Shown here: positions 445 to 59,908 of the stretch, in pieces
Numbering within the stretch: the stretch's first letter is position 1
Layout: every line of letters starts with the position of its first letter
DNA from: Ginglymostoma cirratum
Taxonomy: Eukaryota
Direction of reading: 5' to 3'
Assembly: GCA_024137785.1 (NCBI GenBank)
Contig: JAHRHZ010000032.1
Span: 4,713,674 to 4,777,673, forward strand
DNA: 64,000 nt
The notes under the pieces: generated by a model
The model's input: the letters and a program-made list of their open reading frames with translations, nothing else
Database searches by the model: none
What the model was told of the DNA's origin: nothing
Position numbers and translations under genes: made by a program

Positions 445-525
445 AAGAAACAGGTCACGCATGGATTAAAGCTCCTGTGCCTGCCCAACATAAGTATTGC
501 CATATAAGAGTTTTTGTGGAGCAGT
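445..525 (-). pseudogene. Probable leader exon of a further B7-like copy, which continues left of the window or is lost
   Basis: Homologous to the CR1-split segment 26737-26781 + 30885-30927 that lies just upstream of the B7-like V exon; reads TLIWQYLCWAGTGALIHA*. Confidence 0.4.
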
Positions 526-676
526 GACAGTGATCCTATCTTTGGACCAGACGGTCCAGTTTTAAGTCTAGAATGAGGATCTAATGAACAGATGGCAGTG
601 TGGCAACATGTCCAGATACATTGGTTAAAGACATCGCATCGCGCATCCATGGGCCGACAGTGCTGATTTGATGGGA

Positions 677-985
677 ATAACAAGATGTCGAGCTGGATGA
701 ACACAGCAGGCCAGTAGCATCAGAGGAACAGGAAAGCTGATGTTACCGGTCTAGACCCTTCTTCAGAAAACTATCCAACACTGTTTCATCAAGAAGACAG
801 GTACCTCAGGCATATTTTACTCTTCCAAACATATACAAACAAGAGATCCCAAAGGTTTTTGAAGAAGGGTCTAGACCCGAAACGCCAGCCTTCCTGCTCC
901 TCTGATGCTGCTTGGCCTGCTGCGTTCATCCAGCTCGACACCTTGTTATCTCAGATTCTCCAGCATCGGCAGTTCCTACTACCTC
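677..985. mobile_element. PLE terminal-repeat hairpin with about 90 bp of filler
   Basis: Inverted copies of the PLE 3' terminus at about 677-770 and 859-985. Confidence 0.75.
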
Positions 986-1664
986 TAGGGCTAATTTAAT
1001 GTTCTATTTTCTTGAGTTCGTTCGGTCTATTGTCATGAAGCACTTTTTCATTTATAAAACAGCTCTAATGCATTTCTTAGAATCACAATTAAATTCATAA
1101 ACGTTAATTTGCTCTTTCGATATCGATAGTTCTATATCCGAAACCCTTAACACCTATTATCAGACAGTCCGCTTGAAGGACTTGTTCATAATCAATCAGC
1201 AAAACATAAAGATATTCATCTAAACTTAACAGTATAAAAAGCTATCTACAAGAAATTGCGTATAACTTACATTATGTCTCAATTTTGTTCAGTACTAATA
1301 CAACAGATCCCAAAGCCGTGCAAACCGGAACACAAACTGCTCTGTTACCCTCCCAGAACTGTGTGTAAACTCCTATTAAAACTCCCGTTTCCACGCCGTC
1401 ACTTGTGTCTGGGCAGAAGAATCATTTAGAGGTTAGAAATAACGACCGCGCCTTAAACCAGACTAAACTCTAATCCGATTTAAATTTCAACGGACAGTAT
1501 TGGATTGATCTCAAGGTTTGTGTGATAAATAAACCTGAGTGAGTCCTCATTGTTTGTCAGGTGCAGAGTTTATTTCAAGAGCCCTAGTGATCAGACATAT
1601 ACAGGATGTGAAATGTATTCCTACAGTACTTCGTAAATAGATGGTTAGAAAGTGCGCACCTCCC

Positions 1665-1686
1665 GAAAGAGAAACGAAACCGAAAC
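1665..1686. promoter_or_regulatory. ISRE/IRF-element array upstream of B7-like copy 1
   Basis: GAAAgaGAAAcGAAAccGAAAC (four GAAA cores), about 400 bp upstream of a conserved minus-strand donor (gtaagt at 1265-1270). Confidence 0.6.
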
Positions 1687-2571
1687 AAACGCTGAATCGC
1701 TGACTATTATCATTTGCTGTTTTATTTCACAATTAGAGTATTCTCATTATTTGAGTTTTTGCTCAAATTACAATACTCACACATATACATCGAAAGGAGA
1801 AAGATTCCTGCGTGAGTTCAGCAGCTGGAAACCCTAATCCTCTACAATTAATTCCCTCAATCTATCGTTAACAAGGTCAATTTTCCAGATTCGTTCATTA
1901 CTTTAGCACCTGTTTCTCCCGCTCTGGTATCACACAAAATGTCAAGAGACATGAAATTGATTCAAAGAAGCAAATTCGACGAGTTTATGAATATATCATA
2001 AAACCATGTGACATCAGAGCAGAAATAGACTATTTCAGCGCATTGAGGGTATGTGGCATCATTCAATGAGATCATGCCTTATCTGATAACCCTCAACTCC
2101 ACTTTCCTATCTTTTCCCCATAATCCTATGATTCCCATACTGATTAAAAATCTGTCTACCTGATCCTTGAATGTATTTAGCGACCTAATCTGAATAGCTC
2201 CCTGCGGTAAAGAATTCCACAGATTCACAATCCTCTGAGAGAAGAAAAGCCTCCTCATATTTGGCTTAAAGTGTGCCCCCTTATTCTGAGATTATGCTCT
2301 CTGGTCCTAGACCTTCCACAAGGCAAAACAACCTTTCCATATCTACCGTGTCAAGTCCCCTAAGAATCTTATGCCTTTTCATTCTTCTATATTCAAATAA
2401 ATGCAGCTTCAACCTATTCAGCCTCTCCTCAAAAGACAGGCCCTCTATAATCTGCAACAATTCAGTGAACCTTCTCTGGATTGCTTCCAGTGCCAGCATT
2501 TCTTCAACAAAAAACTGAAAGAACTGTGAATGCTGGAAAACTGAAACCAAAACAGAAGTTGCTGGAAAATC

Positions 2572-2733
2572 TTGACGTTTCGGGCCTAGACCCTTCATCT
2601 GATTTCTGATTAAGGGTCTAGGCCCGAAACGTCAAGCTTTCCTGCTCCTATGATGCTGCTTGGCCTGCTGTGTTCATCCAGCTCCACACCTTGTTATCTC
2701 GGATTCTCCAGCATCTGCAGTTCCTATTATCTC
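2572..2733. mobile_element. PLE terminal-repeat hairpin nested in another PLE-derived short repeat
   Basis: ttgacgtttcgggcctagacccttcatc followed by its inverted copy; flanked by ttgctggaaaatct and ttgctggaaagtct. Confidence 0.75.
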
Positions 2734-3180
2734 TATTGCTGGAAAGTCTCACCAGATCTGCAGACAGTAGTCAGAGTTTTGGGTCCAGGGATCATTCTTC
2801 CCTCAATTCTGTGTCTTTTGCAGTCTTAAAACATGTAAATATTACTCAGCTTCCTGATAATGGGAATAACATCATTTTTCTCCACTTTAGATTCCATGTG
2901 CCAACCTTTCCCTTTGGCCTAGCCTGTCTATATCCTTCAGTAGATTTTTTAATCTCATCTTCAATACTTGTCTTCCCATTCATTTTTTTGTCTAATCCAG
3001 AAACATGGCTAAAGTACATTCACTTCTCATTGAAGTCATAGATCATAGAATCCCTACAATGTGGAATCAGGCCCTTCAGCCCAACAAGTCCACACTGGCC
3101 CTCAGAGCATCCCACCCAGACCAAGTTAATATATATTAATTCACATTATTTATAATCTTATTAATATATATTTTAAATAC

Positions 3181-3372
3181 CTGAGCCATGCTTTTATTTC
3201 AGCTAATGTTGCACATTTATAATCTACTGTTGTCTTCGGTCACATTTGCTTCACTATGTTCATTCAAATCTTTACCGAGTTTCTCTTTCCACCTAATCTC
3301 TAGTTCTGGGTACAAGCCTGAAGATTGCCAAGTCAGTACGTCATGATTATGCCCGTCAGACTTCCAGTAAGT
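3181..3372 (-). pseudogene. B7/BTN-like IgC exon, paralog of 34030-34298
   Basis: YWKSDGHNHDVLTWQSSGLYPELEIRWKEKLGKDLNEHSEANVTEDNSRL*; first Cys changed to Trp; truncated. Confidence 0.75.
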
Positions 3373-3574
3373 TTTGATGAGAAAATAAATATGAATAATA
3401 GTTTATGATTTTCAGCTTGCCATTCTATAAGAATCTGTAGGTAAACTGTAACCAGTTTTAGTACATGATAATTTTCAAAACAGCTGAGAACTCATATTTA
3501 AGAGATTATCTATTCTGTGGTTAATAATACAAGTTTCATTTATTCCATAGCAAAAACAATATGGAACTACTGGG

Positions 3575-3804
3575 GATAAAAGGTACTGCAGATGCTGGAG
3601 AATCCGAGATAACAAGCATGGGGCTGGATGAACACAGCAGGTCAAGCAGCATCATAGGAGCAGGAAAACTTGACGTTTCGGGCCTAAACCCTTCATCAGA
3701 AGGGTTTCATTTCTGATGAACGGTTTAGGCCCGAAACGTCAAGTTTTCCTGCTCCTATGATGCTGCTTGACCTGCTGTGTTCATCCAGCCCCATGCTTGT
3801 TATC
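3575..3804. mobile_element. Young PLE terminal-repeat hairpin with hammerhead cores on both strands
   Basis: Near-perfect arms of about 95 bp; TSD atggaactactggg at 3561-3574 and 3805-3818. Confidence 0.9.
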
Positions 3805-3904
3805 ATGGAACTACTGGGAGTGAGTTGCATTCTTTATGGGGGAATTACTGGCTTTAAGTTAAATAAAGGCATCTCAGAATCATAGAGGATTACAGGTCAT
3901 GCAG

Positions 3905-6570
3905 GCTCAATGACCCTCTGCAGTAAAGAATTCCACAGATGTATTAGTCAGACAGAAGAAATTCCTTCTAATCTGTTTTAAATGTGTGACTCACTATCCT
4001 CAGATTATGCTTTTTGTTCCTAAACTCTCCCACAAGGTGAAATGACCTTTAAAAAGTCTACCTTGTCAAATCCCTGAAGAAGCTTGTATGTTTCAGTTAG
4101 ATTGCCTTTCATTCATCTGTATTCCAACAAGTAGAGATCCAATCTACTTGACCTCTTCTCCTAAGACAGACCGTGCATACTTGGAATCAGCCTCAGGAAC
4201 CTTCTTTACACTACCTCCAATGCCGATAGATCTTTCCTTCGATAAGGGGGCCAAAACTGCTCACAGTATTCCAGCTATGGTCTGACTAGTCCCTTGTATA
4301 GTTTTAGCAAAATCTCCCTAACTTTATTCTCCACTCCTTTGAAATAAAGGCCAACATTCCATTTGCCTTCCCGATTAGCCACTGCAGTTGAATGCTAGCT
4401 TTGTGTGATTTATGGACAATAACTTCAAAATCTCTCTATTCCATAGCTTTCTGCAATCTTTTTCCATTTAAATATTATTCTGCTCCTCTAATCTTCCAGC
4501 CAAAGTTCATAACCTCACAGTTTCCAACATTGTATTTGATCTGCAAAGATTTTGTCCACTCACTTGACCTGATTATGTCCCTCTGCAAATTCTTTGAGTA
4601 ATCCTCACCGCTTGTCCCACCATTGTTTATTGTACACAAACTTGACTATCGTACATTCACTTACCTCATCCAAGTCATTACTATATATTGCCAATAATTG
4701 AGGCTTCAGTACTGATCCCTGTGGCACACGACTAATACAGGTTGCCATTCCTGAAAATGACACCTCTTCTCCTACCTCTCAATCTTCTATTCATTAGCTA
4801 ATCCTCTATTCATGTTAATATACTACTTCCAACACTATTGGCTTTTATTAAGTAGCTAAATGTGGCATTTTATCAAACTCCTTTTAAAAATGAAATATAT
4901 TACATACACTGCTTCTCCTTTATTTATCCTGCTTGTTACCTCTTTGATGATGCATGATGATGTTATGTATTTCTAAATACTTTCCTATTACATTCTTTAC
5001 AATAGACTCGAACCTTTCCCCAATAACAAATGTTAACTTAAAAGGCCGTCAGCTACTTTTTTTGTCTCCTTCCCTGTTTAAACAAAAGTGTTACATTCAC
5101 AGTTTTCAATACTCTGGGACTTTTAAGGAATCTAAGAATTCCTGGAAGATCACTGTGAGTGTGCGCATTATCTCTGTAGCTACCTTTTCTAATACCTTTA
5201 ATTTAATTCCTTCAATATTCCACATGGTCCAAGGGACTTATTAGCCTTTAGCACATCATTTTGCTAGGACTTTTTCTCTAGTGATAGTCATTGTATTTAT
5301 TTCCTGTTCTCCTTTTCTCCCTTGAATATTTAGTAATTTTCGAATACAATTTGTATCTTCTACTGCAAAGAATGATTCAAAGTATTCATTCAACTCCTGT
5401 GCCAGTTCCTAGTTCCCCATTATTATTTCCCCAGCCTCATTCTCTAACGGGCTGATATTCACTTTGGGTTCTTTATTATTTTTCGTACATTTGATAAGCC
5501 TCTTGCTGTTTGTCTATCTGCAAGTTTACTCTCAAAGTTTACCTTCTCCAAGCTTAGCATCTTTTTCATCTTCTTTTGTTGGTCTTTGAAACTTTCCCAA
5601 TCCTCTGGCTTTCCACTAATCTTCACCAATGTGTCTGTTATTTATTTCAATTTGGTGCTATCCTTAGCTTCTCTGGGTAACCATGGTTGGCTTATCCCCT
5701 CCTAGATTCCTTCATTTTTTCTGAGATATGCCTTTGCTATGAACCATGAACTCTTTTATTAAACATCTGCCATTGTTGCTCAACCATCTTTGCTGCTAAA
5801 TTCCTTTCCCAGTACACTCCAGCCAGCTCTGCCCTCATTCCTTTCCAGTTGCTCTTTTTTAAGCTTAACATAGTTGTTTCTGACACAAGTTTCTCTGTCT
5901 CAAACTGAATGCTAACGTCTACCATGTTTCACTTTTCCTGAGGAAACCATTTACTCTGACATTACTATATTGCACTTGTCCCATTATACATCATCAGTTG
6001 GATCCACAACATGTTGTTTTAGAAAACTGCCCAGAATACTTTCTATAAATTTTGCCTCATGGCTACCTTTCCCTATGTGACTATTTGCATCGACATGAAG
6101 ATTAAACTCACCCATGATTAATGTACTGCCATTCTTATATGTCTTCATTATCTTCTGATTTATTCTTTGTTCCACTGTTTAGCTTTATTTTGAAGGGGGG
6201 GCGGCGGTGGAGGTGTAGACTACTTCTACCACCTTCTTTTTCCCCTTTTTACTGGTGTTTGGTTAGCGCAGTTAGCTGAACATCTGGTTAGTGATGCACA
6301 TGTGATTGGGTTAATTTTCGCACTAGCTGAGGTTACGGTGAAGGACTCTCCTTCTCAACCCCTCTGGTGCCCTTACCTCCCCCTTTTTGTTTCTTACCGC
6401 CGCCCATATGGATCCTGCATCTTCCAATACAAAACTGTGTCTTGATATCATACTAATTCCATTCTGTACCAGCAACGCTACTGCATCACAGTTTCCTTCA
6501 TGCCTGTTCTTTTGAAAATTCACGGACCACTCAATCTTCCCACCTTCGCATTCTTTCTCATTTATATCAA
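3905..6570 (-). mobile_element. Old CR1 LINE (APE to 3' end), fragmented
   Basis: IMGEFNLHVD, FLKQHVVDPT and AVRNKKG remnants; degenerate RT region. Confidence 0.75.
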
Positions 6571-6752: not shown

Positions 6753-9700
6753 TTTCAGAGATAGTAGGAACTGCAGATGCTGGAGAATCTGAGATAAAAT
6801 CTGAGTTATCTCAGATTCTCCAACATCTGCAGTTCCTACTATCTCTGAAACAATTTTAATCCCACTGCGAAGCCTCTTCTAAGGATGCCCACCTTGAAGA
6901 AGTTACCCTCCTCCCTCCAGAAAGGCCTCAGTGGATCTCTCTCCGACTGCAACTCCCTCATAATCTCTTCGGCCCTGAAATTGCTCAACCACATCCTGAG
7001 GCAAACCAGGTACTACAGCCACATTACCTTTCTTAGCACATGCCTACAGAACCGGATCATCCCCAATGGACTACAATCCACATTTAGGCCTTTCCAATTT
7101 GTATGTGACAACCGCTACATTCAGAACATTGAAATCCTGCAAAAATATTTCTCCCTGCGACTCCTGAAGCACACTAGCAGCAATGCACCGGCATCTCCTG
7201 GCACTACAATCAAGCCTACCCCAGCTCAGACCCTCCCTCTCCCAGACCTGCAAAGGACCTCTTCTGTTTTTTATTCTTCGTAAGATCCACAACCTGAACT
7301 CACAATTCTACTCAGCTTTATTGGACACTAAAACCTGTAAGTACAGTAAACTTACTGATGCCTGCCACCCAACACGGGCTTCCTCCACCTCCCAAATGCC
7401 CAACCCTACCCAGGACATTCCCCACAATATACCCGCCGCCATTAGCCATGTGGCCACTGTCAGAGCACCCGCGGATGATGTAACATCCTCCGCCACCGGG
7501 TACGCCACTTCTAGGACAGCGAACGCCATCGACACCGCTGCTGATGCCACCGCCTCCGTTTCCGAGGCCAACACCACGGACACTGAGGACTTACCGACCG
7601 ACTCTGCTCCCCCCACCACGTACCCCGCTCCGCCCACCGCCGACACTGACATCACTCTGCCCACCGCCGACACCGACGTCACTCCGACAACACCGACGCC
7701 GAAGTCACTCCGCCCATCGCTTCCACAGCCAGCTCCAGAGGAGACTGTAGCACCCAGCCCTGCTGAGTCTTCACCATCCCCCCAGACCTCTCCCTCACTG
7801 AGGATGAACGGTCAGTCCTCAATAAAGGGCTCACCTTTGTCCCCCTCCACCCAAGCATCAATGAATTCTGCTCACGCTTGGACATTGAACAGTTTTTCTG
7901 CCGTTTCCGCCTCTGCACTTACTTCTTTAACCGTGAGCCTAACTCTCCCTCTGCTGACCCCTTCCCCCGCCTCCAACACATCCCCTCCTCCTGGACACCA
8001 CCCCAAGGCCTCCTACCCTCCCTTGACCTTTTCATCTCCAACTGCCGTCGAGACATCAATCACCTCAACCTCTCCACCCCTGTCACCCACTCCAACCTCT
8101 CCCCCGCAGAAAGTGCAGCCCTCCGCTCCCTCCGCTCCAATCCCAACCTCACCATAAAACCCATGGACAAGGGAGGCGCAGTTGTAGTATAGTGCACTGA
8201 CCTCTACATCGCTGAGGCCAGGCGCCAACTCTCCGACACCTCTCCTACCACTCCCTTGATCATGAGCCCCCTGCCGATCTCCAAGCCATCATCTCCCAAA
8301 CCATCCACTACCTCATCACCTCAGGTGATCTCCCACCCACAGCCTCCAACCTCATCGTTCCACAACCCTGCACCGCCCGCTTCTATATCCTTCCCAAAAT
8401 CCACAAATCTGACTGCCCTGGTCGACCCATTGTCTCCGCCTGCTCCTGCCCCACCAAACTTATCTCCACCTATCTCAACTCCATTTTCTCCCCTTGGTCC
8501 AGGATCTCCCAACCTATGTCCGTGAACCACCCATGCCCTCCACCTCCTCCAAAACTTCCAATTCCCTGGTCCACAACACCTCTCTTTACCATGGACATCC
8601 AGTCCTTATACACCTGCATTCCCCATGCAGATGGTCTAAAGGCCCTCCGCTTCTTCCTGTTCCGCAGGCCCGACCTGTCCCCCTCCACTGACACCCTCAT
8701 GCGCTTAGCCGAACTCGTCCTCACCCTCAACAACTTCTCTTTCAATTCCTCCCACTTCCTACAGACAAATGGGGTGGCCATGGATACCCACATGGGCCCA
8801 AGCTATGCCTGCCTCTTTGTAGGTTACGTGGAACAATCCCACTTCTGTAGCTACATTGGCCCTAAACCCCACCTCTTCCTCTGTTACATTGATGACTGTA
8901 TCAGCGCCGCCTCGTGCTCCCATGAGGAGCTCGAACAGTTCGTCCACTTCACCAACACCTTCCACCCCAATCTTAAGTTCACCTGGACCATCTCTGATAT
9001 CTCTAATATCTCTCTCCCCATCTTGGACCTCTCTGTTTCCATCTCTGGCAACCACCTGGAAACCGATATCCATTTCAAGCCCACCAGCTACCTAGAATAA
9101 ACCTCCGCCCACCCATCTTCCTGCAAAAATGACATCTCCTATTCCCAATTCCTTCGCCTCCATCTGCTCCCAGGATGAGGCATTCCACTCCCGAACATCT
9201 CAGATGTCCTCGTTTTTCAAAGACCGCAAATTCCCCCCGTCAGTGGTTGAAAATGCCCTCGACCGTGTCTCCCGCATTTCCCGCAACACATGCCGCACAC
9301 CCCCTCCCCGCAGTAACAACCAAAACAGAATGTCCCTCATCCTCACATACCACCCCATCAACCTCTGGATCCAACTCATCATCCTCCGACACTTCTGCCA
9401 TCTGCAATCCCACCCCACTACCAAAGACATTTTTCCCTTCCCACCCTTATCTGCTTTCCAGAGGGACTACTCTATCCGTGACTCCCTTGTCCGCTCCACA
9501 CTCCTCTCCAGTCCCACCACACGCAGCACTTTTCCCTGCAAACGCAGGAAGTGCTACACCGGCCCCCACACCTCCCCCTTCATCCCCATCCCACGCCCCA
9601 AGAAGACTTTCTACATTAAGCAAATGTTCACCTGCACATAATGTGGTTTACTGTATCCGCTGTTCCCGTTGTGGTCTCCTCTACATCGGGGAAACCAAGC

Positions 9701-10354
9701 GGAGGCTTGGGCTCCGCTTTGCGGAAAACCTACACTCGGTTTGCAATAAACAACTGCACCTCCCAGTCGCAAGCCATTTCAACTCCCTCTCCCATTCCTC
9801 AGATGACATGTCCACCCTGGGCCTCCTGCAGTGCCACAACAATGCCACCCGATGGTTGCAGGAACAGCACCTCATATTTCGCTTGGCAACCCTGCAGCCC
9901 AATGGTATCAATGTCCATCCACAAGCTTCAAAATCTCCTCTCCTCCAACCGCATCCCAAAACCAGCCCAGCTTGTCCCCATCTCCCTATCCTGTCCTTCC
10001 TCCCACCTATCCACTCCTCCCACCTCAAACCCCACACCCATCTCGTACCTACTAGCCTCATCCCGCCCCCTTGACCTGTCCGTCCTCCCTGGACTGACCT
10101 ATCCCCTCCCTAACTCCCCACCTACACACGCCTTTACTGGCTCCATCCCCGCCTCCTTGACCTGTCTGTCTCCTCTCCACCTATCTTCTCCTTTATCCAT
10201 CTTCTATCTGTCTCCCCCACTCTCTCTGTTTATTTCAGAACCCCCTTCCCCTCCCCATTTCTGAAGAAGGGTCTAGACCTGAAACGTCAGCTTTCCTGCT
10301 CCTCTGATGCTGCTTGGCCTGCTGTGTTCATCCAGCTCTACACCTTGTTATTTT
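6753..10354 (+). mobile_element. Near-full-length Penelope-like retroelement (RT + GIY-YIG), frameshifted
   Basis: ORF from 6885. RT motifs KPMDKGGAVVV, TMDIQSLYTCIPH, GVAM..MGPSYA and YIDD; GIY-YIG motif NVVYCIRCSRCGLLYIGETKRRL. Short inverted terminal piece at 6753-6850; TSD aaatcctaatca at 6741-6752 and 10355-10366. Confidence 0.92.
10261..10288 (+). ncRNA. Minimal hammerhead ribozyme core in the PLE 3' terminal repeat
   Basis: CUGAAGA-A-GGGUCUAGACCU-GAAAC-GUC. Confidence 0.7.
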
Positions 10355-26372: not shown

Positions 26373-26697
26373 CCCAAACAGACAGCACAATTGTTTCATC
26401 ATCAAATCCATTGTTGGCGCTGAAGCTGCACTTGTACATTCCTTCATCCCAAACATTAACATTCTTCAGAGTAAGAGATGCATCTCTTCTGTTGACTGAG
26501 AACCTGCAAATGCAGTTCTCTTGGTGTAGTTGTGTTGTTCACTGAAGTCATCCTGTCTCTGTACTCATAGATAGTTTGCTCTTCACCTACCCTCTTCCAG
26601 ATCACTATTGGGTTACTGCTGTCATGCCCCTCAAAGGTACATTTGAGAGTGACAAGTTTATCAATTCTGTATGAATATGCTGGTCACAAGAGCATTT
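26373..26697 (-). pseudogene. B7/butyrophilin-family V-set exon, frameshifted
   Basis: Pieces translate as RIDKLVTLKCTFEGHDSSNPIVIWKRVGEEQTIYEY, DDFSEQHNYTKRTAF and RDASLTLKNVNVWDEGMYKCSFSANNGFDDETIVLSVW|gt. DASLxLxNV..DEGxYxC is typical of CD276/VTCN1/HHLA2/BTN V domains. Confidence 0.8.
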
Positions 26698-30884: not shown

Positions 30885-30925
30885 TGTTCGACATAAATAT
30901 GGCGATATGACAGTTTTGTGAGAAC

Positions 30926-36680: not shown

Positions 36681-37080
36681 NNNNNNNNNNNNNNNNNNNN
36701 NNNNNNNNNNNNNNNNNNNNNNNNNNNNNNNNNNNNNNNNNNNNNNNNNNNNNNNNNNNNNNNNNNNNNNNNNNNNNNNNNNNNNNNNNNNNNNNNNNNN
36801 NNNNNNNNNNNNNNNNNNNNNNNNNNNNNNNNNNNNNNNNNNNNNNNNNNNNNNNNNNNNNNNNNNNNNNNNNNNNNNNNNNNNNNNNNNNNNNNNNNNN
36901 NNNNNNNNNNNNNNNNNNNNNNNNNNNNNNNNNNNNNNNNNNNNNNNNNNNNNNNNNNNNNNNNNNNNNNNNNNNNNNNNNNNNNNNNNNNNNNNNNNNN
37001 NNNNNNNNNNNNNNNNNNNNNNNNNNNNNNNNNNNNNNNNNNNNNNNNNNNNNNNNNNNNNNNNNNNNNNNNNNNNNNNN
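36681..37080. other. Assembly gap (400 N)
   Basis: Run of N. Confidence 1.
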
Positions 37081-37087
37081 GAAATTT

Positions 37088-38835: not shown

Positions 38836-41800
38836 CTTAAAACAAAATGTCAAAAATATACTTCGGAGCTTGCCAATGAAAATTGCCTGGAAGGTTCAAA
38901 GTAACTAGGTGAGGAAGAAACAGTTCACATGAACTCTTCTGCTCTCCAGCTTGTAACTATCCCTCACTCCTCAGTTTGTTTATTTCTCAATTTTGCCCTC
39001 TCTCAGGAATGAAGGGCTCATCATATGAAGAGCACTGAGGGCTGTGAATATGTACACAGTGGAGTTTAGAAGGATGAGGAGGAATCTCATTGAAACTTAT
39101 AGAATATAGAAAGGGTTGGATAAAGTGAACATGGGGAAGATGTTTCCATTAGTAGGAGAGACTAGGACCCGAGGGCACAACCTCAGAGTGAAGGGATGAT
39201 CTTGAGAAGTGAGATGAGGAGGAATTTCTTCAGCCAGAAGGAGGTGAATCTTTGGAACTCATTGCCATAGAAGACTGTGGAGATGAAGTTATTGAGTATC
39301 TTTAAGAGAAAGGTAGGTAGGTTGTTGATTGGTAAGGGGATCAAAGATTAGGGGGAGAAGGCAGAAGAATGGGTTTGAGAAATATATCAGTCATTTTTGA
39401 ATAGCGGAACAGCCTTAATAGACTGAATGATCTAGTTCAGCTCCTATATCTTATAATTTTATGGTCTCTTTCTTTTCAGTCTCTGTTTCTTTCTCTTCCT
39501 TGCCTAGTTACTCTCTCAGGACACCTGCAGGTTCCAGGCAATTTTCCTGTGAAGATTCTTCAACTTAATGGCTTTATATGTGAAGAATTTTTCTTTGGAA
39601 GTAGTGAAGGTAGAGGTTGTACTTCATCACATGCTCTCAAATGGACTGTTTTTCTGCAATATTTGCATGATACTTCACAACTTTGGGCACCATAGCACTG
39701 GATTTATGGTTTATGGATTTGCACTTGCTCTTCCATGTATACTTGCTTTTCTGATGTTTCTTTTATAATCCTGTAGTTAAGAACTGCATGGTCACTGGAG
39801 GTTTCCTGAGCCAAGGTTGCTTGTTACTACCTAGCATTGCTCTGTTATATTTATAGATGGCTGTTCATCTTATCAGCTGTGTTGCTTTTTCTATGGTGAT
39901 GTCTATCCTCAGATTGCAAAAAGCTTGACAGGTATTCATCAATAATATCAACAGCAATGCAGCCTCAGATTAATTCTAGTTATCGATCTCCACTTTTGAA
40001 TCATTCAGCTGGGCTGTATAGGTCTTTAATAAAAGTAGTTACTGGTTCACATAGTTTCTGGACCCTGTGTTGAATTTGTCCTTTTCCAGGATGCTGTTGC
40101 TCCTGAGATTGAAAGAGTCACTGAAGCCTTTTAAGACTTCAGCAGATTTATGCCTTGTCTTGTAACAAGTCTGCTATTGTTCCTATGGATCAATGTGTTG
40201 ACATGTTCAGCTTCAGCCTTACTGTCCAATCCTTAAGAATCTTTTTCCTCCGAAGTGCCAGTTTTGAGTTTAATTTGGCCCTGCCAAAGCTGTTGAAAAC
40301 TGTTTTACATTAAGTTATTTCAATAGCCTCTTTACTTCCTCTCCCTGGAGTATTGAATATTTGCAGCCACTCTTTAGTTTTTCTTGTTGTGTTACCTTGC
40401 TGTCACCGTGTTTAGTGGTGATGACTTCAGACCCAGAGAGCAGGATATTAAACATAAGCTGCCCTTACTAGGGATCTGATTTTTCCAAACTATGTTCCCT
40501 GTAATTCTTACTTCCATTATGAAGATCTCCAAGGTCAGTGCACAGCACTGGTTACCAGAACCAGACCTCAAAGTCCCAGCATGTCAATTGGCATGCATGG
40601 AACCTTCAAATGACTTCTACATGATAACTTAGGGGGGTCTATTGTTCCCACAGGTGTCTGCCTAATGCACAATTTTAATTGATCTTTTACTGTTTTTTAA
40701 AAGTTGCTCACCAGATCCATGATCTTTGTTTGGTTCTCTTACTCGAAGCCTGCAACTAAAGGATTGGGATTTTCTTCACAGGCTGCTATGATTCTCTGTG
40801 CAGCCTTCAAAAACTATTTCTGACTCTCCAATTTGACTATGGAGCTGCTTTGGGAGTTCATCAACTGTTGTTCTTCTGCTGTTTTGGCATCGCAGTTTCA
40901 GCGCTCTGTAGTCCATCACTGCTGCCCCCATGTCATTTAGGAAAAAGTGGTGGGGTAATGGGTAATGTCACTGGACTTGTAATACCGAACCCAAGGTTAA
41001 TGTCCTGGGGATATGTGTTAGAATCCCACCACAGCAGATGTTCAAAATTTGAGTTCAATAAAAAGTTAGACTAATAGTGACAATGTAACCATTGTAAATT
41101 GTCATAAGCACTCATTCAGTTCACTAATCCCTTTAGGAAGGAAACCTGCCATTCCCCTCTAGTCTAGATGCGACTACAAACTTACAGCAATGTAGTTGAT
41201 TTGGTCCTAGCCATCGATGCAGACATCTCATGAAGAAATAGATGTTGATTAGTTTTGGAATGATTACCTAATTGCCGGTATTTTCAAATAACAGCTGATT
41301 AATTACATACTGCTGAATTATAACTCCGTACGGTGAGGTCCTACATTGTTGAAACCATGATCATTCTCCCAATATTTCTGAGTCATATGCCATCTTACGT
41401 AATTATGTCGCAGTCATTAACATTTACAAACCCAGATACAACAGAATTCGTGGCAAAAACATGCTGAATGATAGGGAGATAGGATGCCTCAGGAGATGTG
41501 ACTTTAATTGGAACAATCTGTACTATGAAGAAACCAATTAGAAATAAACAGAAAATACAAACAAAATATAAGAGTTTTGCTATTGTTCCAGTTCCTTCTT
41601 GTAGAGACAGTGCAGAACTTCCTGAACAGAAAATAGAGAAGCAAATGATGTGATTGTTATTTCAAATATCGCAAAGCATTTAAAAATTATTAAATGTTAT
41701 TTAAAAATTATTTAAAATTATTATAGCACCATCCATAGACATAACATGTTACAGGCACGTTAAAAATGCTTCATTGACTGAAATGCCATATAATGGTCTG

Positions 41801-45280: not shown

Positions 45281-45391
45281 CTTTGTTTCGTGTTTAGTAG
45301 AATTTCGCAATGAGGATGAAGTAACATATGAGCAGAATGAATAAAATATAGCGGACGTTTGACAGGACAGTGCCCAAAGTGATCTTGGTTT
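45281..45391 (-). CDS. Transmembrane exon of the VJ receptor, Arg in the TM, in-frame TAA at 45294-45296
   Basis: Acceptor gtgttgcag, donor gtatgt; 111 nt, phase 1-1. Reads (E/K)TKITLGTVLSNVRYILFILLICYFILIAKFY*TRNK. Confidence 0.7.
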
Positions 45392-45533
45392 CTGCAACAC
45401 AATCATACTGAATAAAATATAATCCTTCAATTGTGAGAAAACTATGATTTTTATCACAAAGTGAAATCTAAAATCATTGATAAGTGAGGGAAATCAGCAG
45501 CCAATCTTAAAAGATGGTGCTGTAGGAACAGAT

Positions 45534-45809: not shown

Positions 45810-46517
45810 GCTATAGGAAGAGATTTCTTCAGATCTCTGTTTTAATAAAATCTATTCTATGGAACAGACAAATGAAGGCTGACTCTCCCTCCTCCTGCTC
45901 CTGCTCCTGGCAGAGGATTTTGTCCCAGCTCCTGCCAAAGCCCCAGCCTCTGCCTGCCTCCTCAGCCTCCCCCTCAATGGCACATGTGGTTTAGATGCCG
46001 TTATTGCATACTGTATGTACAGTAATGACTGCATTGGTGCATGCAGCGACATTTCTTGCAGACTGCCCTGTTGCAGGCAGCTGGCATCTGAGGTCACATC
46101 TGCAGTGTGCAGCAGCCATTTAGTGATGTAGGTAATCATTCTGTCGAAAGACTTTAGAGCTTTTAGTAGCTAATTCAAGTTGCAAGAACCAGTTCAATAA
46201 AAATTGGAAGGGAATTAAAGGCCCATCTTTGTACTTTATTTATTTTTACTAGGCATAATATTTCATTTGGAAAGTATAAAAGAAAATAGTCCTTCAGGTG
46301 TTGCTGACAATTTTAGCACAATTTCCAAGTTGTGCGTAGTCATCTAGTGAGGGCTCAGTGCTGTCAGTTCCTTCCCTTTCCAAATATGCAAGTTCTTCTT
46401 TGTCCCATCCCATCTCTATTATTTCTGCCCACCACTACTTATAATGAGACATAATTAAAATATAAAGAGGCAATTCTAATGGGGAAATGAAAAATAGCAG
46501 CAATATAATGCACCTAC

Positions 46518-46547
46518 TTTCATAGGGGTCATATTTGTGAAACAGAT
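46518..46547 (-). CDS. Candidate stalk micro-exon (DLFHKYDPYE) of the VJ receptor
   Basis: TACTAAC branch point, pyrimidine tract, ttttcacag acceptor and gtaggt donor; 30 nt, phase 1-1. Confidence 0.55.
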
Positions 46548-51000: not shown

Positions 51001-52365
51001 AAGGCATTTAGCATCCTGGCCTTCATCGGTTGAGGCACTGAGTGTAGGAGTTGGGACATTATGTTATAGGTGTATAAGTCATTGATGAGGCCACACTTGG
51101 AGCATTGTGTACAGTTTTGGTCACCCTGTTATAGGAAAGATATAGTTAAGCTGGAAAGTGTGCAAAGAAGATTTACAAGGATGTTGCCAGGATTAGTAAG
51201 CCTGAGTTATAGGAAGAGGTTGGCCAGGATAGGACTTTATTCCTTGATATGTAGGAGAATGAGGTGTGACCTTCTTGAGGGGTATAAAATCATGAGGGAC
51301 ATAGACAGGATGAATGCATATCGTCTTTTTCCTAGGGAAGGGGAATTGAAAATTAGAGGGTTTAGGTTTAGGGTGAGTAGGGAAAGATTTAAGAAGGACA
51401 TGAGGGGCAACTTCTTCGTGCAGACAGTGTGCGTTTATGGAATGGCCTGCCTGAGAAAGTGGTTGAGGCAAGTACAGTAGCAACATTTTAAAAACATTTG
51501 GATTGGTACATGGATGAGAAGGGTTTAAGACCATAAGACCATAAGACATAGGAGCAGAAATTAGGCCATTCAGCCCATTGCGTCTGCTCTGCCATTCAAT
51601 CATGGCTGATAAGTTCCTCAACCCCATTCTCCTGCTTTCTCTCCATAACCCTTGATCACCTTAATAATCAAGAACCTATCTATCTCAGTCTTCAATGTAC
51701 TCAATGATCTGGCCTCCACAGCCTTCTGTGGCAGTGAATTCCATAGATTCACCACTCTCTACCTGAAGACGTTTCTCCTTATCTCCGTTCTAAAAGGTCT
51801 TCTCTTTACTCTAAGGCTGTATCCTTGAGTCCTAGACTCTCCTACCAATGGAAGCATCTTTCCAACATCCATTTTGTCCAGGCTATTCAGTATTCTGACA
51901 GTTTCAGTTTGATCCCCCCTTCTTCTAAACGCCAATGAGTATAATCTCAGAGTCCTCAAACGTTCCTCATATGTTAAGATTTCCATTTCTCGGACCATTC
52001 TCGTGAACCTCCTCTGAATCTGCTCCAGGGCCATTACATCCTTCCTGAGATATGTGGCCCAAAACTGCACACAATACTCCAAATGTGGCCTGACCAGAGC
52101 CTTATTAAGCCTCAGTAGTACATCCCTGCTTTTTATATTCAAGTCCTTTCAAAATAAATGCCAACATTGCATTTGCCTTCCTGACTACTGACTCAACCTG
52201 CAAGTTTACCTTGAGAGAATCCTGGACTAGGACTCCCAGGTTCTTTGCACTTCAGTGAGGGATATGGACCAAATGCGGGCAATTGGAACTAGTTGAGAGG
52301 GCACCATGGTCAGTATGGACCAGTTTGGGCTGTAGGGCCTGTTTCCATGCTGTATAACTCTATGT
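48085..52365 (+). mobile_element. 5'-truncated CR1 LINE (esterase remnant, APE, RT), 3' end interrupted by a second CR1
   Basis: GDFNFP, KSPGPDQ, YMDFSKAFDKVP, VPQGSVLGPLLF and KFADDTK; the 3' UTR resumes at about 52256. Confidence 0.9.
51530..52253 (-). mobile_element. CR1 3' fragment nested in the 48-52 kb CR1
   Basis: KALVRPHLEYCVQFW..YLRKD; (accataag)n tail at 51530-51550. Confidence 0.85.
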
Positions 52366-53949
52366 GGTGAGTACAGGTGAGTTTTGATCAATGATAACTC
52401 CCAGAGTGTTGATAATGGGGGATTCAGTAATGGTAACACCATTGAATGTCAGGGGATGTTGGGTTAGATTGTCTCCTATTGGTGATGGTCGTGGGCTGGC
52501 ATTTGTGTAGCGTGAATGTTACTTGCCACTTGTCAGTGCAAGCCTGGATATTGTCCAGATCTTGTTGCATTTGGACACAGACTGCTTCAGTGTCGGAGGA
52601 TTCACGAATGGTGCTGAACATTATGCAATCATCGGTGAACAATCCCATTTCTGACGTTCTGATGGAGGGAAGCTCATTGATGATGCAGCTGAAGATGGTT
52701 GGGCCCAGGACACTACCCTGAGGAACTCCAGCAGAGATGTCCTGGAGCTGAGATGACTGACCTCCAACAACCACGACCATCTTCCTCTGTTAGAGGGAGT
52801 CATAACCAAGCAGTGCAAAGTAATTGTGAGATGATAAACTAACTACTGTGTGTAATCTTTGTTGCAGCAGCACAAGGGAGAGGATCAAGCACTAAATGCT
52901 ACATGCAGGAAATAATCAGAATGTTAATCTTTAGGAAGTGGGTTCTGAATATGAGGCAAGACCGGTAAAGCCTGTGATTTTTAACCTGGGAAAAGAACGT
53001 ATAAGGGGAGACGTTATAGAGTTTTTATGGTCATTTATGATTAAAAGATTGTCAATTATATATTTGACGTGTTATTTTAAGTTAAATTGTAAAAGTAGGG
53101 CAATATCAATACTAAATCATTGATCGGTTACAGCACAGGAAGTTTCTGTATCCATGCTCTCTCACTGCTGATTTCTTCATATGCTTATCTCTTCAGATTC
53201 TTATCAATTCTTTTATGAAAGCCATGATTGAATCTTTTTCCACCATTTCATGCATGCATTCCAATCCTAACCACTTGCTGTATATAAAAGAAAAAATCTG
53301 CATTAAACTCTACTTTGTTTTACCATTCAACTAACATGTTCTTTAATTCTTGGTTGTTTTGTCAATGGAAACAGTCTCTGCCTATCTACCCTCTTCAGGC
53401 CCCTCCTGACTTGAACACATCTACCAAATCTCCTCTCAAACTTCTCTAAGGAGAACTACCCCAGCTTCAAAGGTGGCAAACATGAGATTACACAGGTGCC
53501 ACATACTAATACATTGCAACGGATGATTGGTAGGCAAAACTGTAAAGGAACAGTGAGCTAATATAAAAGAGGGGATGGTTCACATTAGGTGAAACTACAT
53601 CCCCCATGACAGTCAAAGGTACGGCAATCAAAGCCAGAGGTCCAAGGATGATAAAATAAGTAGAGGCTGGATATTTGCTGCAGCTGACACATCTACTGAG
53701 TAATCTGAGGTTGCATGCTGCTCCTTAACATGTGGAACCATGTGCCCAGGTCATTATTGAATGCTCAGAATAGCTCACAGTCGGACTGCTTCTGAGGTCC
53801 TGCCAGCATTGAAACATGCACCCACTAATAAACTGGAGCAGCTGCCACTGGCAGTAGTCTATCACACTATCTTTTGTCCATGAGCAAAAACGTAAGAGAG
53901 GACCCAAAGAAGTGAAGAGTTAAACCATCTTCACATCATTGCCTCAAAA

Positions 53950-55755
53950 GAACATAGAACATAGAACAGTACAGCACAGTACAGGCCCTTCGGCCCATGA
54001 TGTTGTGCGGAACCTTTACCCTAAGCCTGAGGTCTATCTAACCTCCACCTCTACCTTATACTATCATCCATATGCCTCTCTAATAGTCACTTAAATGCCC
54101 CTAATGAGGCCGACTCCACTACCCTCTCCGGCAATGCATTCCATGCCTCTACCATTCTCTGAGGAAAGAATCTACCTCTGATATTTCCCCAATATCTACC
54201 TCCACTCACTTTAAAACTATGTCCCCTCGTAATAGCTACCTCCACCCTAGGAAAAAGTCTCTGGCTGTCTACTCTATCTATACCTCTGATCATTTTATAC
54301 ACCTCTATCAAGTCACCTCTTATCCTTCAAAAGAGAAAAGCCCTAGCTCTCTCAACTTTTCCTTGTAAGACCTTCCCTCCATTCCAGGCAACATCCTGGT
54401 AAATCTCCTCTGCACCTTTTCCAACACTTCCATATCTTTCCTGTAATGAGGTGACCAGAACTGGACACAATACTCCACATGTGGCTTTTGTATAGCTGGA
54501 GCATAACTTCACGGCTCTTGAACTCAGTCCCTCTATTAATGAAAGCTAACACACCATTTGCCTTCTTAACAACTCTATCCACCTGGGTGGCAGCTTTCAG
54601 GGAACTGTGGACATGAACCCTGACATCCCTCTGCTCCTCCACACTGCCAAGAATCTTTCCGTTAACCCTGTATTCTGCTTTCAAATTTGTCCTTCCAAAA
54701 TAATCACCTCACACTTTTCAGGGTTAAACTCCATCTGCCACTTCTCACCCCAGCTCTGCATCCTATCAATGTCTCTTTGTAACCTAGAACAGCCCTCCGC
54801 ACTATCCACAACTCGACCCACCTTCATATCATCCGTGAACTTAATAATACACCGTTCCACTCCTACGTCCAAATTATTTACAAAAATCACAAATAGAAGA
54901 GGACCCAGAACAGATCCTTGCGGTACACCACTCGTAACTGAGCACCATGTTGAATATTTTCCGTCCACTACCACCCTTTGTCTTTGAAGGGTCAGCCAAT
55001 TCTGAATCCAGTCTGCCACATTCCCCCATCCCATGCCTCCTTACTTTCTGCATGAGCCTATCATGGGGAACCTTATCAAACGCCTTACTTAAATCTATGT
55101 ATACCACATCCACTGCTCTACCTTCATCCACTTGTTTGGTCACCCCTTCAAAGAATTCAATAAGGTTTGTGAGGCATGATCTACCCCTCACAAATCCATG
55201 CTGACTATGACAAATCAAACTGTGCCTATCCAAGTGATCATAAATCCTAAATCTGAGAGCCCTTTCCAATAATTTGCTCATCGCTGAAGTAAGACTAACT
55301 GGCCTGTAATTTCCGGGGTTGTCCCTATTCTCTTTTTTTGACCAAGGGAATGATGTTTGCCTGTGTCCAATCTTCCAGCATTATACCCATGGACATTGAG
55401 GATGAAAAGATCATCGCCAAAGGCCCTGCGACCTCTTCCCTCACTTCCCATAGAATCCTTGGATAAATCCCATCAGGCCCTGGGGACTTATCTATCTTCA
55501 AGTTCCTCTAAATTCCTATTCGTCTTTCACACTAGCATCCACCTCCTCTAGCCTACCAGCCTGTTTCACACTGTCCTCCCCTACAACTAGGTCCTTCTCA
55601 GTTGTGAATACTGAAGAAAAGTATTCATTAAGGACCTCTTCTATCTCTTTAGGCTCCGTGCACAAATTCCCTTTACAATCCTTGATTGGGCCTACCCTTT
55701 CTCTGGTCATTCTCTTATTCCTCACGTACGTGTAAAAAGCCTTGGGGATTTCCTT
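53950..55755 (-). mobile_element. CR1 LINE 3' half (RT)
   Basis: QHGFVRGRSCLTNL, SGVPQGSVLGPLLF; (agaacat)n tail at 53950-53967. Confidence 0.9.
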
Positions 55756-56099
55756 GAAGTGGAAGAGGGAGTATGAGTCACAATCATACACCATGAAGAT
55801 ATCAGTCAAGGAAAAATTGGCACTCATGTTAGAGATGAGATTGTAAATGACATTGCACTTATTAAGGAGTTGTAATATACTGCACATACCCAGCAGCATG
55901 CCAGACACAATTTTCATTGGAAAGCCTTGTTCCAAGAGAAGCTTTTACTCTCTAATGCCAAATGTCATGATCTCCTCTAACATGCGGGTGCTAATGTCCA
56001 CATAAGGAGACCTGTCCCTATCCATCATTAGGCCAACATGATCAGCAAACATTCACAATCATACCTTACAAATGCACCACTTGTGCATTGCAGATATAA

Positions 56100-56295
56100 T
56101 CATAGAATCCCAAGAGTGCAGAAAGAGACCAAACAGCCCATTGAGTCTGCACCGACCTTCAGCATCCCACCCAGACTGCCCCCCTCCACTTAACCTCGTA
56201 ACCCTGCATTTATTATGGCTAAACTATCTAATCTGCATGTTTCTAGGCACTATGGGGCAAGTTAGCATCAATCCACCTAACCTGCGCATTTTTGC
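56100..56295 (-). mobile_element. HE1-type V-SINE fragment (others at about 3040-3122 and 16195-16272)
   Basis: Minus strand gcaggttaggtggattgatgctaacttgcccc V-domain-like block and CR1-like tail. Confidence 0.6.
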
Positions 56296-57485
56296 ATTCA
56301 ACTTAGTGGATTCTCATGTGCAATTAGATCACTGACACTGGGTGAGGAGCATGAAACCACCATGCAGAATATTGCAGAGGTAGATTTGGGCAACTCTCCC
56401 TGATGGAGAGAGGACAGACACAGCCTTGCCGAGCCATGCAGATGCAGAGTCTCAGGAATGGAGCTTCTACCTTGTAATTTAGAAGCATAACTTCTGCTAC
56501 TGGCCTAAGTATCCTAAGGCTGTGTAGGATTGTGAGCTAAAAGTGGAAAAGTCCAGCCAGTTCATGTGCATGGCTATGGCTCAGAGTCTGTGTGTGCATA
56601 AACCTCTCTGTTGAGAGAGTCGTGAACCACATGGTGAGTGAAACAGTTAAGTGAGTTATGCTTTAGACATACAGTCAGCGATACACAAAGCGAGCAAAGC
56701 ATGGGGCAACTCCAGATGCATAAAGCAATCAGAACAAACAAAGCATTCAGACTATCAAAGTTAGCAGCTAGAAGCCACACTATCAGAGGCCTTACGGGAT
56801 AGAACAGACAATGCCTATGAAAGACTGTGGGAAGCAAAGATAATATGGGACATGCAGATCAAAAAGTGTGGGAATTGTAATATGTGTGCTTCATCTGTAT
56901 AAAGCTTGAAGATTATCTGGAACCCAACACACTGAGCTTTAACCTTCCCCTTCATATATGTGTCTGAAAAAAATGATTGCTACCCTGTTTTCCTGAAGTC
57001 TTGTATCAATCTATTAAGTGCACCTAGAAGAGTGAGCCATTAGTGGCAGCACCTTCAATGCATAAAGGAACTGTCCATTGATGTCCACATGATGGAGCCT
57101 CACATTAAGTTTTCTAGATTAGTCAGTGGCATTGGCGGCACGTTAATATTTTGAGAGGATATCAGTTGGGTCCCTCCTGATGCTCCCCTCCAGACATCCA
57201 AGAGTACAGGAAAGAGGGTGTCAACAAGGAGAGATCATGTGGCGTTCCTAAGAGGTGCCTGTCTTTGTGTCTGTGCAGCAGGGCCAAGGTGAGGAGGCTC
57301 CCCCTGTAATGATTCAAAAGCAGTTTCCTCTGGAGACCCCCCATCCATTCATCCATGATGACGTTAACCACCACAGATGACTCGTCTAAGATAAGTCAGC
57401 AGGATGCTCCCACCTTCTTTCAGTCCACAAGGAGAGAATCACATAGAATCAGCCAATGGCAAAGGCGAAAGCCTGTTAGGCAGAA

Positions 57486-57572
57486 GATAACAAGGTGTAG
57501 AGCTGGATGACAAAAATCCAGCTCTAAACTTTGTTATCTCAGATTCTCCAGCATCTGCAGTTCCTACTATCT
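57486..57572. mobile_element. Very short PLE terminal hairpin
   Basis: TSD ctgttaggcagaa at 57473-57485 and 57573-57585. Confidence 0.8.
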
Positions 57573-58685
57573 CTGTTAGGCAGAACATTGAGTGAGTCAT
57601 TGTGTTTTCTCCTTGCTGCTTGCAATGTAGTAATCTTTTCTAAATATAATAAAAATACTGACATTTGAAGGCATGGGTGTGAGTCTCACTTTTTTGATGG
57701 TAAAATGTGAAGAAGGGTATAAACTGGTGAAAGAGATAAAGAATTCCTCAGCGGTAATACCAAAGGACAATGTGCATCATTCATTGGCAGTAACTGTGTG
57801 CATGTTCCAGGCTGCGTTAGTGATGCCAAGGGATTATTTTCTTGTTTGTTCATTCATGGATGTGGACGTAACTGGCTAGGCCAGCATTTATTGTCCATTT
57901 TTAATTACCAGTGGGCAGTTAAGAGTTAACCATATTTCTGTGGTCTGTGCCCACACGTATGTCAGATCGGATAAGGACTGTGGCTTCCTCTCGTAAAGGA
58001 TGTAAGTGAACTAGACAGATATTTACAACAATTAACACTCATTAATAGGTTGGCTTGTTTTATGGTTCAAGATTTTCATTGACTCAAATTGATTCAAAGA
58101 CTTTAGGGAGATTCCTAGAACTTTCTAGATGAGGGACTTTACTGAAGTTTGGATAAATTGAAGAAGCTGGGATTGTTCTCCTTAAAGAGAAGGTTGAGAG
58201 GAATTTTGATTGGTATTAAACATCATGAGGGGCCCAGCGTAGAGATAGTTTCCATTGACCAAAGTTGTGGGGACCAGAGGGCACAGAGGAAAACATTTTT
58301 TTTAAACTCAGTCTGTGCATTAGAGTCTGCAACACACTGCCTGAAAAGTTAGCGGAGGCAAATTCAACAGTGGCTTTCCAAAGGCATCTGGATAAACCCT
58401 TTGGGGGTGGGTGAAAAACCTGCAGCGGTACTGGATAGAAAGGAATGGGGAAGGCTGTGCTGCTCCTGCAGAGAAAGAGAGCTGATGATGGTTTTCTGTA
58501 TTTCTGGATCTTTCTACCAATTGAGGCTTACTGTAATAGCGTATACTTCCAAAATATTAACTAAAGGACATGTGCTGCTGTTATAGTTTCACCGTGCTTT
58601 AATGTTGTAGAAATTCTAAGAATGAACACATTACTTCGTGTACGATTGCATCTTACATCTGAAACAATTTCTCCAAAGTACTAAC

Positions 58686-58727
58686 CTGCCTTTGTAGTTA
58701 CATGTACTTCTGTGCACATTTTTGTGG
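58686..58727 (-). CDS. Candidate hinge exon (ATKMCTEVHVTTKA) of the VJ receptor
   Basis: Branch-like cactaat, acceptor ttaaacag, donor gttagt; 42 nt, phase 1-1, in frame with the V exon. An internal gcacag acceptor gives an in-frame 24-nt alternative. Confidence 0.55.
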
Positions 58728-59315
58728 CTGTTTAATCACCAATTAGTGAACACAATTTCACAAGCTATTTAGTGCTCTTGTAGTGCACTGACAGCATAAC
58801 GTGAGCTGGGCCTGGATTCAAGTCCGAACTACTTCAGTGTATTATAACAGGATGATTAAAGCTTTTATAAAAGGCTCTCAGTTAAATTCGAGGCCGAAAC
58901 ATTCACTGGATACGGTTGACGAGTGGAAAAGGACATGAGTTCTGACGAAGAGTAACTAGACTCTAAGACCTTAACTCTGCTACCTGCTCACAGATGCTGC
59001 CAGACCTGCTGAGCTTTGCCAGCAATTTCTGTTTTTGTGTTGGAAAAGGATTACTGATTTGATGCCCGAATGGGTACTAGACAGAGCACCAGACAGTGGG
59101 AAATGTTCCACGCTGCTGTCAGAACAGCCTGAAGGGAGCTCATTTATGCTAGATTACATTCATAGATTATTTCTCATATTCTCATGTTAATAGTTCATAA
59201 ACACAGCAAGTCTGGCCATTCAGGATTTTCAGATGTACAAAATTTGCTTTTTTTGGTTTCCAATTCAATACCTAACCCAAACTATAGGGAGTTTCATTGA
59301 GATATTTTCCCTTAC

Positions 59316-59663
59316 CTTGAACAATTAGGTGAGTCCCGGGGCCAGTGATCTTTCTCAGTTGTGAACCTTCACGAATGACCATGTTGCAATAATACAAACC
59401 AATGTCAGAATAGCGAACACCTTTAATGAACAATCTGCTGTGAAAATTAGGCATGTTGCTACTGAAGAAAATGAAACGACTATCCTCCTCAGTACTGATA
59501 TTTCTCACTTGCTTTTCACCAAATTCACTTTGGTAATGCCAATAGAAATGGGCTTTCACTGCTTTGCCTTTGTATTGCAGATCACAATTGAAGCGGGCAG
59601 AGTGGTTTGCCAGCAGCCTCAGTAATGAGGGAGATTGTAGCAGCTCCAGTTCAGTGGCAGCAC
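59316..59663 (-). CDS. VJ-type IgSF receptor, exon 2: intact V-set Ig domain with germline-joined J-like motif (NKp30/NCR3-, TMIGD2- or CD28-family-like)
   Basis: Acceptor ttataatag, donor gtaagg, 348 nt, phase 1-1, open frame: CAATELELLQSPSLLRLLANHSARFNCDLQYKGKAVKAHFYWHYQSEFGEKQVRNISTEEDSRFIFFSSNMPNFHSRLFIKGVRYSDIGLYYCNMVIREGSQLRKITGPGTHLIVQ. B-strand Cys, C-strand Trp, DxGxYYC and GxGT are all present. Confidence 0.9.
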
Positions 59664-59780
59664 CTATTATAACACAATTTTGAAGATAGTAAAGAAAATA
59701 CGCGAACCATTCTAAAAAACCTGCACAGTACTAAATAGTTAATTATGCATGTTACTTCAAAGTGGAATCAATGTACTTAC

Positions 59781-59817
59781 ACACTGAATACAACAGCAAT
59801 ATAACAATTAACATCAT
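59781..59817 (-). CDS. VJ-type IgSF receptor, exon 1 (signal peptide MMLIVILLLYSV, phase-1 donor)
   Basis: Minus strand reads ATG ATG TTA ATT GTT ATA TTG CTG TTG TAT TCA GTG T|gtaagt. Hydrophobic leader, canonical donor, 117-bp intron to the V exon. Confidence 0.85.
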
Positions 59818-59891
59818 GCCTTGGTCACAGTGATAGGAACAACCACGGCTTCTGGCTGAATAAAAGCAACTGAGCCACAATTTTGCAGTAA

Positions 59892-59908
59892 TTTCAGTTC
59901 CTCTTCCG
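59892..59908 (-). promoter_or_regulatory. Ets-IRF composite element (EICE) plus an adjacent Ets core in the receptor promoter
   Basis: Minus strand CGGAAGAGGAACTGAAA, about 75 bp upstream of the ATG; matches GGAAnnGAAA. Confidence 0.55.

Follow-up and report, generated by a model that had tools for sequence, protein, structure and literature searches.

We analyzed a 64,000-nucleotide (nt) stretch of Ginglymostoma cirratum DNA (assembly GCA_024137785.1, contig JAHRHZ010000032.1, positions 4,713,674 to 4,777,673 of the forward strand), called the window below and numbered from its first letter, which holds a gene for a putative single-domain immunoglobulin (Ig) receptor and, downstream on the same strand, relics of B7/butyrophilin-type exons. 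The DNA is vertebrate, of shark type and AT-rich, and is crowded with reverse transcriptase and endonuclease fragments of long interspersed nuclear elements (LINEs) and with a high-copy short interspersed nuclear element (SINE). Pfam searches of the larger open frames of both strands returned only immunoglobulin and retroelement domains, and besides the receptor and the relics the window consists of LINE and SINE sequence. An initial annotation took the locus for an NKp30-like receptor in tandem with a cluster of B7-like ligand genes. We favor, at a probability of roughly 0.7, the reading that one live receptor gene stands beside long-dead butyrophilin/B7-type exons and that their adjacency is leftover content of the region, not a functional receptor-ligand module. 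The spliced receptor model, which was searched one exon at a time, has the following exons:

59781..59817, minus strand: leader exon, with an ATG at 59817, 37 coding nt and a phase-1 donor (T, then GTAAGT) after 59781
59316..59663, minus strand: intact, germline-joined variable-joining (V-J) exon of 348 nt, phase 1-1, open throughout
45281..45391, minus strand: transmembrane (TM) exon reading (E)TKITLGTVLSNVRYILFILLICYFILIAKFY and then a TAA stop at 45296-45294, with GTATGT at 45280

The V-J exon encodes a single V-type domain together with a germline-joined, J-like strand of the form G-x-G-T-x-L-x-V. The two canonical cysteines, the Trp, a YYC motif and the J-like TGPGTHLIVQ are all present (pattern C..W..YYC..GPGTHLIVQ), and the exon matches the Pfam V-set family at 3.9e-6. 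The TM exon was found by a hydrophobicity scan, as an Arg-containing span at 45.3 kb. Its acceptor, preceded by ...gttgcag, is in phase 1 and compatible with the V-J exon, the first two bases finishing the codon opened by the last G of that exon. The TM exon reads ...LSNVRYILFILLICYFILIAKFY up to its stop, so that a basic residue, an Arg, lies near the outer end of the membrane span and the protein ends four residues past the span, in a tail lacking any signalling motif. Leader (37 nt), V-J (348 nt) and TM (95 nt) segments add up to 480 coding nt, or 160 codons.

RNA reads were mapped onto 54000-59950. A 676-nt RNA contig from run X2 matches 59316-59661 without a single difference and links 59663 with 59781 over a 117-nt GT..AG intron, and the same 59781-59663 joint occurs in one read of run X7 (poly-A RNA). 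In run X1, which belongs to a separate study, a 213-nt contig shows no differences in the V-J exon and ends its match exactly at 59316, with 78 further letters lying elsewhere. Since X1 and X2 have zero depth in the unique intron bins, both runs represent RNA; with contigs and joints falling on the predicted borders, the receptor gene is therefore transcribed, and it is spliced at the predicted leader/V borders and at the V donor. Beyond that donor, 268 letters of the X2 contig fall outside the mapped stretch; 111 of these are explained by the TM exon and the remainder is unplaced.

Close relatives of the V-J domain are few, with only two found among 1.8 billion cluster representatives: Chiloscyllium plagiosum XP_043556870.1 (67% identity over V-J), which bears the automatic name 'CD8 beta chain-like', and Mustelus asterias XP_078088791.1 (52%), listed as 'uncharacterized'. 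Homologue searches by word index, run with the V exon and with the Mustelus protein, brought back the same two sequences only. The Mustelus protein ends in ...SVVRYILFVLLMCYFILVETFY, and its residues 140-171 align by tblastn to 45392-45297 with 56% identity (E 9.8e-7). It shares with the receptor the TM Arg, the C-terminal FY and the position of the stop, in an Arg-TM C-terminus of the form ...VRYILF..CYFIL...FY, and differs from it in having about 10 additional stalk residues (VAARKNQNYE). The Chiloscyllium model lacks a TM segment; its tail, the C-terminal 49 residues, aligns instead to 58400-58555 on the minus strand, roughly 0.8 kb downstream from the V-J exon, with 56% identity and one stop. 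This stretch has zero RNA cover in G. cirratum and represents either a lineage-specific alternative exon (perhaps encoding a secreted product) or an annotation error in Chiloscyllium. The identity suggested by the name of the Chiloscyllium protein, CD8-beta, was rejected for the receptor on account of the TM Arg, the absence of a tail and a score no better than that of NKp30. The next-best library matches, at about 30% identity per domain, are elasmobranch multi-VJ-domain proteins of Chiloscyllium, Hemiscyllium and Scyliorhinus ('SIRP-like', 'IgSF2/3-like', 'perlecan-like'), which have three to nine tandem Ig domains, whereas the receptor has one. The receptor is a member of a small, fast-evolving elasmobranch family of single-VJ, Arg-TM proteins.

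A hinge micro-exon resembling the Mustelus stalk was sought by scanning 45392-59316 for open phase-1/1 exons, and none was confirmed. One candidate on the minus strand, 57618-57568 (AARRKHNDSL...), was rejected: its similarity is not significant, its acceptor is poor, it abuts a SINE and its RNA depth is zero. The peptide nonetheless resembles the Mustelus stalk, and with the SINE insertion adjoining it at 57485-57575 it could represent a hinge micro-exon that this SINE has put out of action. The V-J/hinge/Arg-TM gene that had been placed at 59.8-38.8 kb is accordingly borne out in its V-J and Arg-TM exons, by RNA splicing and Mustelus homology; its hinge is unconfirmed, and coding ends at 45.3 kb.

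Receptors of the non-rearranging VJ type, NKp30 among them, have been discussed as kin of the gene invaded by the RAG transposon. In architecture the receptor and NKp30 (NCR3) are alike, each with a single V-J-type Ig domain from one exon, an Arg in or at the membrane span and no signalling motif of its own; unlike NKp30, the receptor has almost no stalk residues and a tail of only four. In a single-sequence search of solved structures, an Ig light chain (2.8e-5) and T-cell receptor alpha (TCR-alpha) ranked ahead of NKp30 (E 0.006). A profile of three shark sequences placed NKp30 at 2.1e-5, the best non-rearranging match and above MXRA8 and CD8-beta, with the TCR-alpha V domain at 7e-8. The name NCR3 is absent from all 31 library hits, and a protein-atlas search with the receptor V domain gave generic V-set/Ig clusters only. 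An AlphaFold model of the V-J domain, made from a three-sequence alignment, reached a pLDDT of 43 and was unusable. The receptor is NKp30-like, as first described, in architecture only; the sequence searches give no support for orthology, TCR-alpha and Ig light-chain V domains scoring higher and no relative being named NCR3.

To count the B7/butyrophilin-type relics, we combined a motif scan with the open-frame list and ran tblastn on every piece. They total three, all on the minus strand:

about 34290-34030, minus strand: Ig-C relic 1, open in its first half, then with a frameshift, a Trp for the second Cys and an in-frame stop ahead of a phase-1 GTAAGT donor at 34029
26373..26679, minus strand: Ig-V relic of 307 nt, with phase-1 borders and one frameshift near 26520-26535
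about 3378-3214, minus strand: Ig-C relic 2, which duplicates the first half of relic 1, with Trp in place of the first Cys and a stop at its end, its second half missing

The first half of C relic 1 (...WKSDGHNHNMLTCQSSGFYPEPVISWKQKVGKDLNE..., 34296-34120) matches the Pfam family PF22705, 'BTN3A2-like Ig-C', at 1.2e-7, with 32.1 bits against a cut-off of 27, and in solved structures the Ig domains that match it best are the Ig-C domains of BTN3A1/2/3 (3e-4). C relic 2 (3402-3220) reaches 1e-3 and 19.5 bits for the same family, under the cut-off. The V relic follows the pattern VTLKC...IWKR...DASLTLKNVNVWDEGMYKC...IVLSVW and retains the hallmarks C..W..DEGMYKC. Its second half matches the Pfam V-set family at 4.6e-6; among solved structures the relic meets B7-H3, BTN2A1 and B7-H4 at 1e-3 to 6e-3, amid NCAM and contactin matches. 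Its first half gave nothing family-specific in solved structures or Pfam, and the protein atlas returned generic V-set/Ig clusters for the relic. By these matches the V relic is a V-set domain, in a generic sense only and with no family assignable. B7-H6 chains, which are present among the solved structures, fell outside the top 60 for every relic piece, a weak test with pieces this short (49-66 amino acids). The C relic is, to judge from its family matches, butyrophilin-like rather than demonstrably B7-H6-like.

In minus-strand order the relics run C (34.2 kb), V (26.5 kb) and C (3.3 kb), and the V relic and C relic 2 could be one gene spanning 23 kb of retroelements. No leader, TM or B30.2 exons were found for the relics, and tblastn with the relic pieces over the whole window disclosed no further V or C copies. 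The relics resemble the IgV and IgC ectodomains of butyrophilin/B7 genes in having V and C exons on one strand, phase-1 borders and, in C relic 1, a score above the PF22705 threshold; they differ from such genes in that every copy is broken, leaving none with a functional open frame, and in lacking a specific match to B7-H6. The expectation of B7/BTN-like V and C exons on the receptor's strand was therefore upheld, as was their description as pseudogenes, by their frameshifts, stops and lost cysteines. The nearest of them, said to lie within about 4.5 kb of the receptor, is about 11 kb from its stop codon, because coding stops at 45296-45294. Nor do C and V exons repeat down to the start of the window, as had been proposed: one V and two C fragments make up the set, and at 445-490 there is a 32-nt intron match. 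The internal matches in question are:

2809-3030 and 3212-4497, minus strand: duplicated segment B, matching segment A (33156-33376 and 34118-35170) in the same orientation
459..490, minus strand: 32-nt match (30/32) to intron sequence at 26750-26781, immediately upstream of the V relic, with no recognisable V exon after it

Segments A and B are 73-81% identical across blocks by blastn. In a global alignment the exon, the adjoining intron and a LINE fragment are each 82% identical, and the codon differences between the C copies comprise 15 nonsynonymous and 5 synonymous changes. The equal identity of exon, intron and LINE, together with this 15:5 ratio, indicates that the C exon has been neutral since the duplication. 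Read in this way, the C copies are old neutral duplicates, in which dead DNA was copied, and they record no turnover of working ligand genes. What had been described as a B7-like cluster in birth-and-death evolution thus comes down to three fragments, with C copies that drifted neutrally after duplicating.

The receptor and the relics are separated by a gap in the assembly:

36681..37080: assembly gap, the sole run of N in the window, flanked by the arms of an inverted SINE pair (36558-36680 and 37081-37154)

The receptor lies wholly above the gap and the relics all lie below it; therefore, their linkage depends on the correctness of the join. The gap does not affect any reading frame, because the nearest exons or frames, at 34296 and 41398, are more than 2 kb off, and the open frames running across it are produced by the run of N. 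The left flank carries an inverted SINE pair of which the second arm breaks off after 47 nt. The right flank opens with the same 47 nt (37084-37130 equals 36634-36680, 100% identical) and then continues the second arm, with one mismatch to the complement of the first. An intact inverted pair of the same SINE occurs at 3575-3810. Most simply, the two flanks would be overlapping ends of one sequence broken at a hairpin-forming repeat. A wrong join of receptor (above 37080) and relics (below 36681) would explain why the gap separates every relic from the entire receptor, and a high-copy SINE does flank the gap; yet the exact 47-nt repeat, the completion of the inverted pair with one mismatch and the intact pair of the same kind elsewhere make such an assembly artefact very improbable.

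Between the gap and the TM exon lies one further frame that may bear on the receptor:

41398..41621, minus strand: putative second TM-like open frame, with a Lys in its hydrophobic span, a tail of about 40 amino acids containing ..EASYLPI.. and a good phase-1 acceptor matching the V-J phase

This frame lacks a Pfam match and is single-copy in the window. It may serve as an alternative last exon, be what is left of a lost second receptor or have arisen by chance. Among the retroelements, LINE fragments lie at 27000-30800 (plus), 48900-51500 (plus), 51700-52800 (minus) and 54000-55950 (minus), with matches to RVT_1 (2e-17) and Exo_endo_phos_2 (2e-7). Two of these fragments are inside the 14-kb V-J/TM intron, and the RNA runs are rich in reads from these LINE families. 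A Pro/Ser/Thr-rich retroelement with weak similarity to RVT_1 is present in three copies of alternating orientation, at 6800-10300 (plus), 16500-18300 (minus) and 18100-19900 (plus); the copies are located between the V relic and C relic 2 and show strong swings in GC skew.

In the reading we favor, that of a live receptor gene beside long-dead exons, the receptor would be a 160-residue type I membrane protein with a signal peptide, one V-J domain, a stalk of a few residues, the Arg-containing span and the four-residue tail. By analogy with NKp30, NKp44 and TREM, the membrane Arg would pair with an acidic residue of an adaptor that carries the immunoreceptor tyrosine-based activation motif (CD3-zeta, FcR-gamma or DAP12 type), and ligand binding by the V domain would then presumably activate the cell. 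The relics would be decayed exons of one or two B7/butyrophilin-type genes, downstream on the receptor's strand and incapable of encoding a ligand, and the two C copies would stem from the duplication of a segment already drifting neutrally. The adjacency itself would be a remnant of a region rich in Ig superfamily genes, possibly related to the major histocompatibility complex (MHC) and heavily invaded by retroelements. Butyrophilin and butyrophilin-like genes (BTN, BTNL2) and NCR3 are both found in the human MHC; therefore, a VJ gene beside BTN-like DNA needs no receptor-ligand explanation, and a common origin of the region would suffice to explain the two being neighbours. The premise that receptor and ligand genes of these kinds are unlinked in mammals is correct for NKp30 and B7-H6, but BTN/BTNL genes share the MHC region with NCR3 in humans. 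Several points weigh against the reading of leftover adjacency. NKp30 is the top non-rearranging profile match (2.1e-5), so that the receptor may truly be related to NKp30 and may, with that, have a B7-H6-type ligand. The single frameshift of the V relic could be an assembly error, in which case the V exon may be live. The shortness of the stalk is unusual; a hinge exon at 45.4-54.0 kb is possible, and the protein model may be incomplete. The adaptor pairing and the activation are proposed from the Arg alone, and the genomic evidence on the neighbourhood covers the 64-kb window.

The initial annotation envisaged an NKp30 homologue physically linked to a B7-H6-type ligand family, in which the window would be the decayed edge of a birth-and-death cluster with working ligands just outside it, and the whole a relic of a proto-MHC. 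The NKp30-style architecture, the rank of NKp30 as best non-rearranging match in solved structures and the V and C relics of B7/BTN type, which share the receptor's strand and come within about 11 kb of its stop codon, would all fit, and Flajnik et al. in 2012, a paper cited in PMC11599192 and PMC10751288, reportedly argued that NKp30 and B7H6 co-evolved. However, TCR-alpha and Ig V domains outscore NKp30, the name NCR3 occurs nowhere among the 31 library hits, butyrophilin is the best family for the relics, with B7-H6 chains outside the top 60 for every piece, and the C copies have been neutral since they duplicated, so that this account is, in our estimate, quite unlikely; nothing supports a functional linked module. 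Unlikely, too, is that the receptor is a true shark NCR3 orthologue in MHC class III, with relics of MHC-linked butyrophilin/BTNL type, which would make the locus a case of ordinary MHC synteny with no receptor-ligand meaning. The butyrophilin Ig-C family is indeed the best match of the C relic, and the MHC linkage of BTN and BTNL2 in humans agrees with such an arrangement. NKp30, moreover, is treated as an MHC-borne VJ gene across vertebrates (PMC10751288). Against this, there is no MHC marker gene in the 64-kb window, and NCR3 orthology is unsupported by the searches, in which the relatives are named 'CD8 beta-like' and 'uncharacterized'.

A bolder version, which we consider decidedly doubtful, is that a divergent NKp30-lineage receptor still sits beside the remains of a B7-type ligand family, with intact, co-evolving ligand copies just outside the window. 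If true, the locus would document directly, through physical position, that VJ receptors of the NKp30 type and B7 ligands started out side by side in a proto-MHC. NKp30 and B7-H6 are a textbook example of receptor-ligand co-evolution without linkage, and a physical linkage conserved in cartilaginous fish would bear on the origin of receptor-ligand pairs. The favored reading, in which the neighbouring exons are leftovers, yields no evidence for a linked module, and both the receptor and the relics belong to kinds already known. What the window does yield is a transcribed, mis-annotated or unannotated family of single-VJ, Arg-TM receptors restricted to elasmobranchs, which is of use for the annotation of shark immune genes and as a lead for synteny work.

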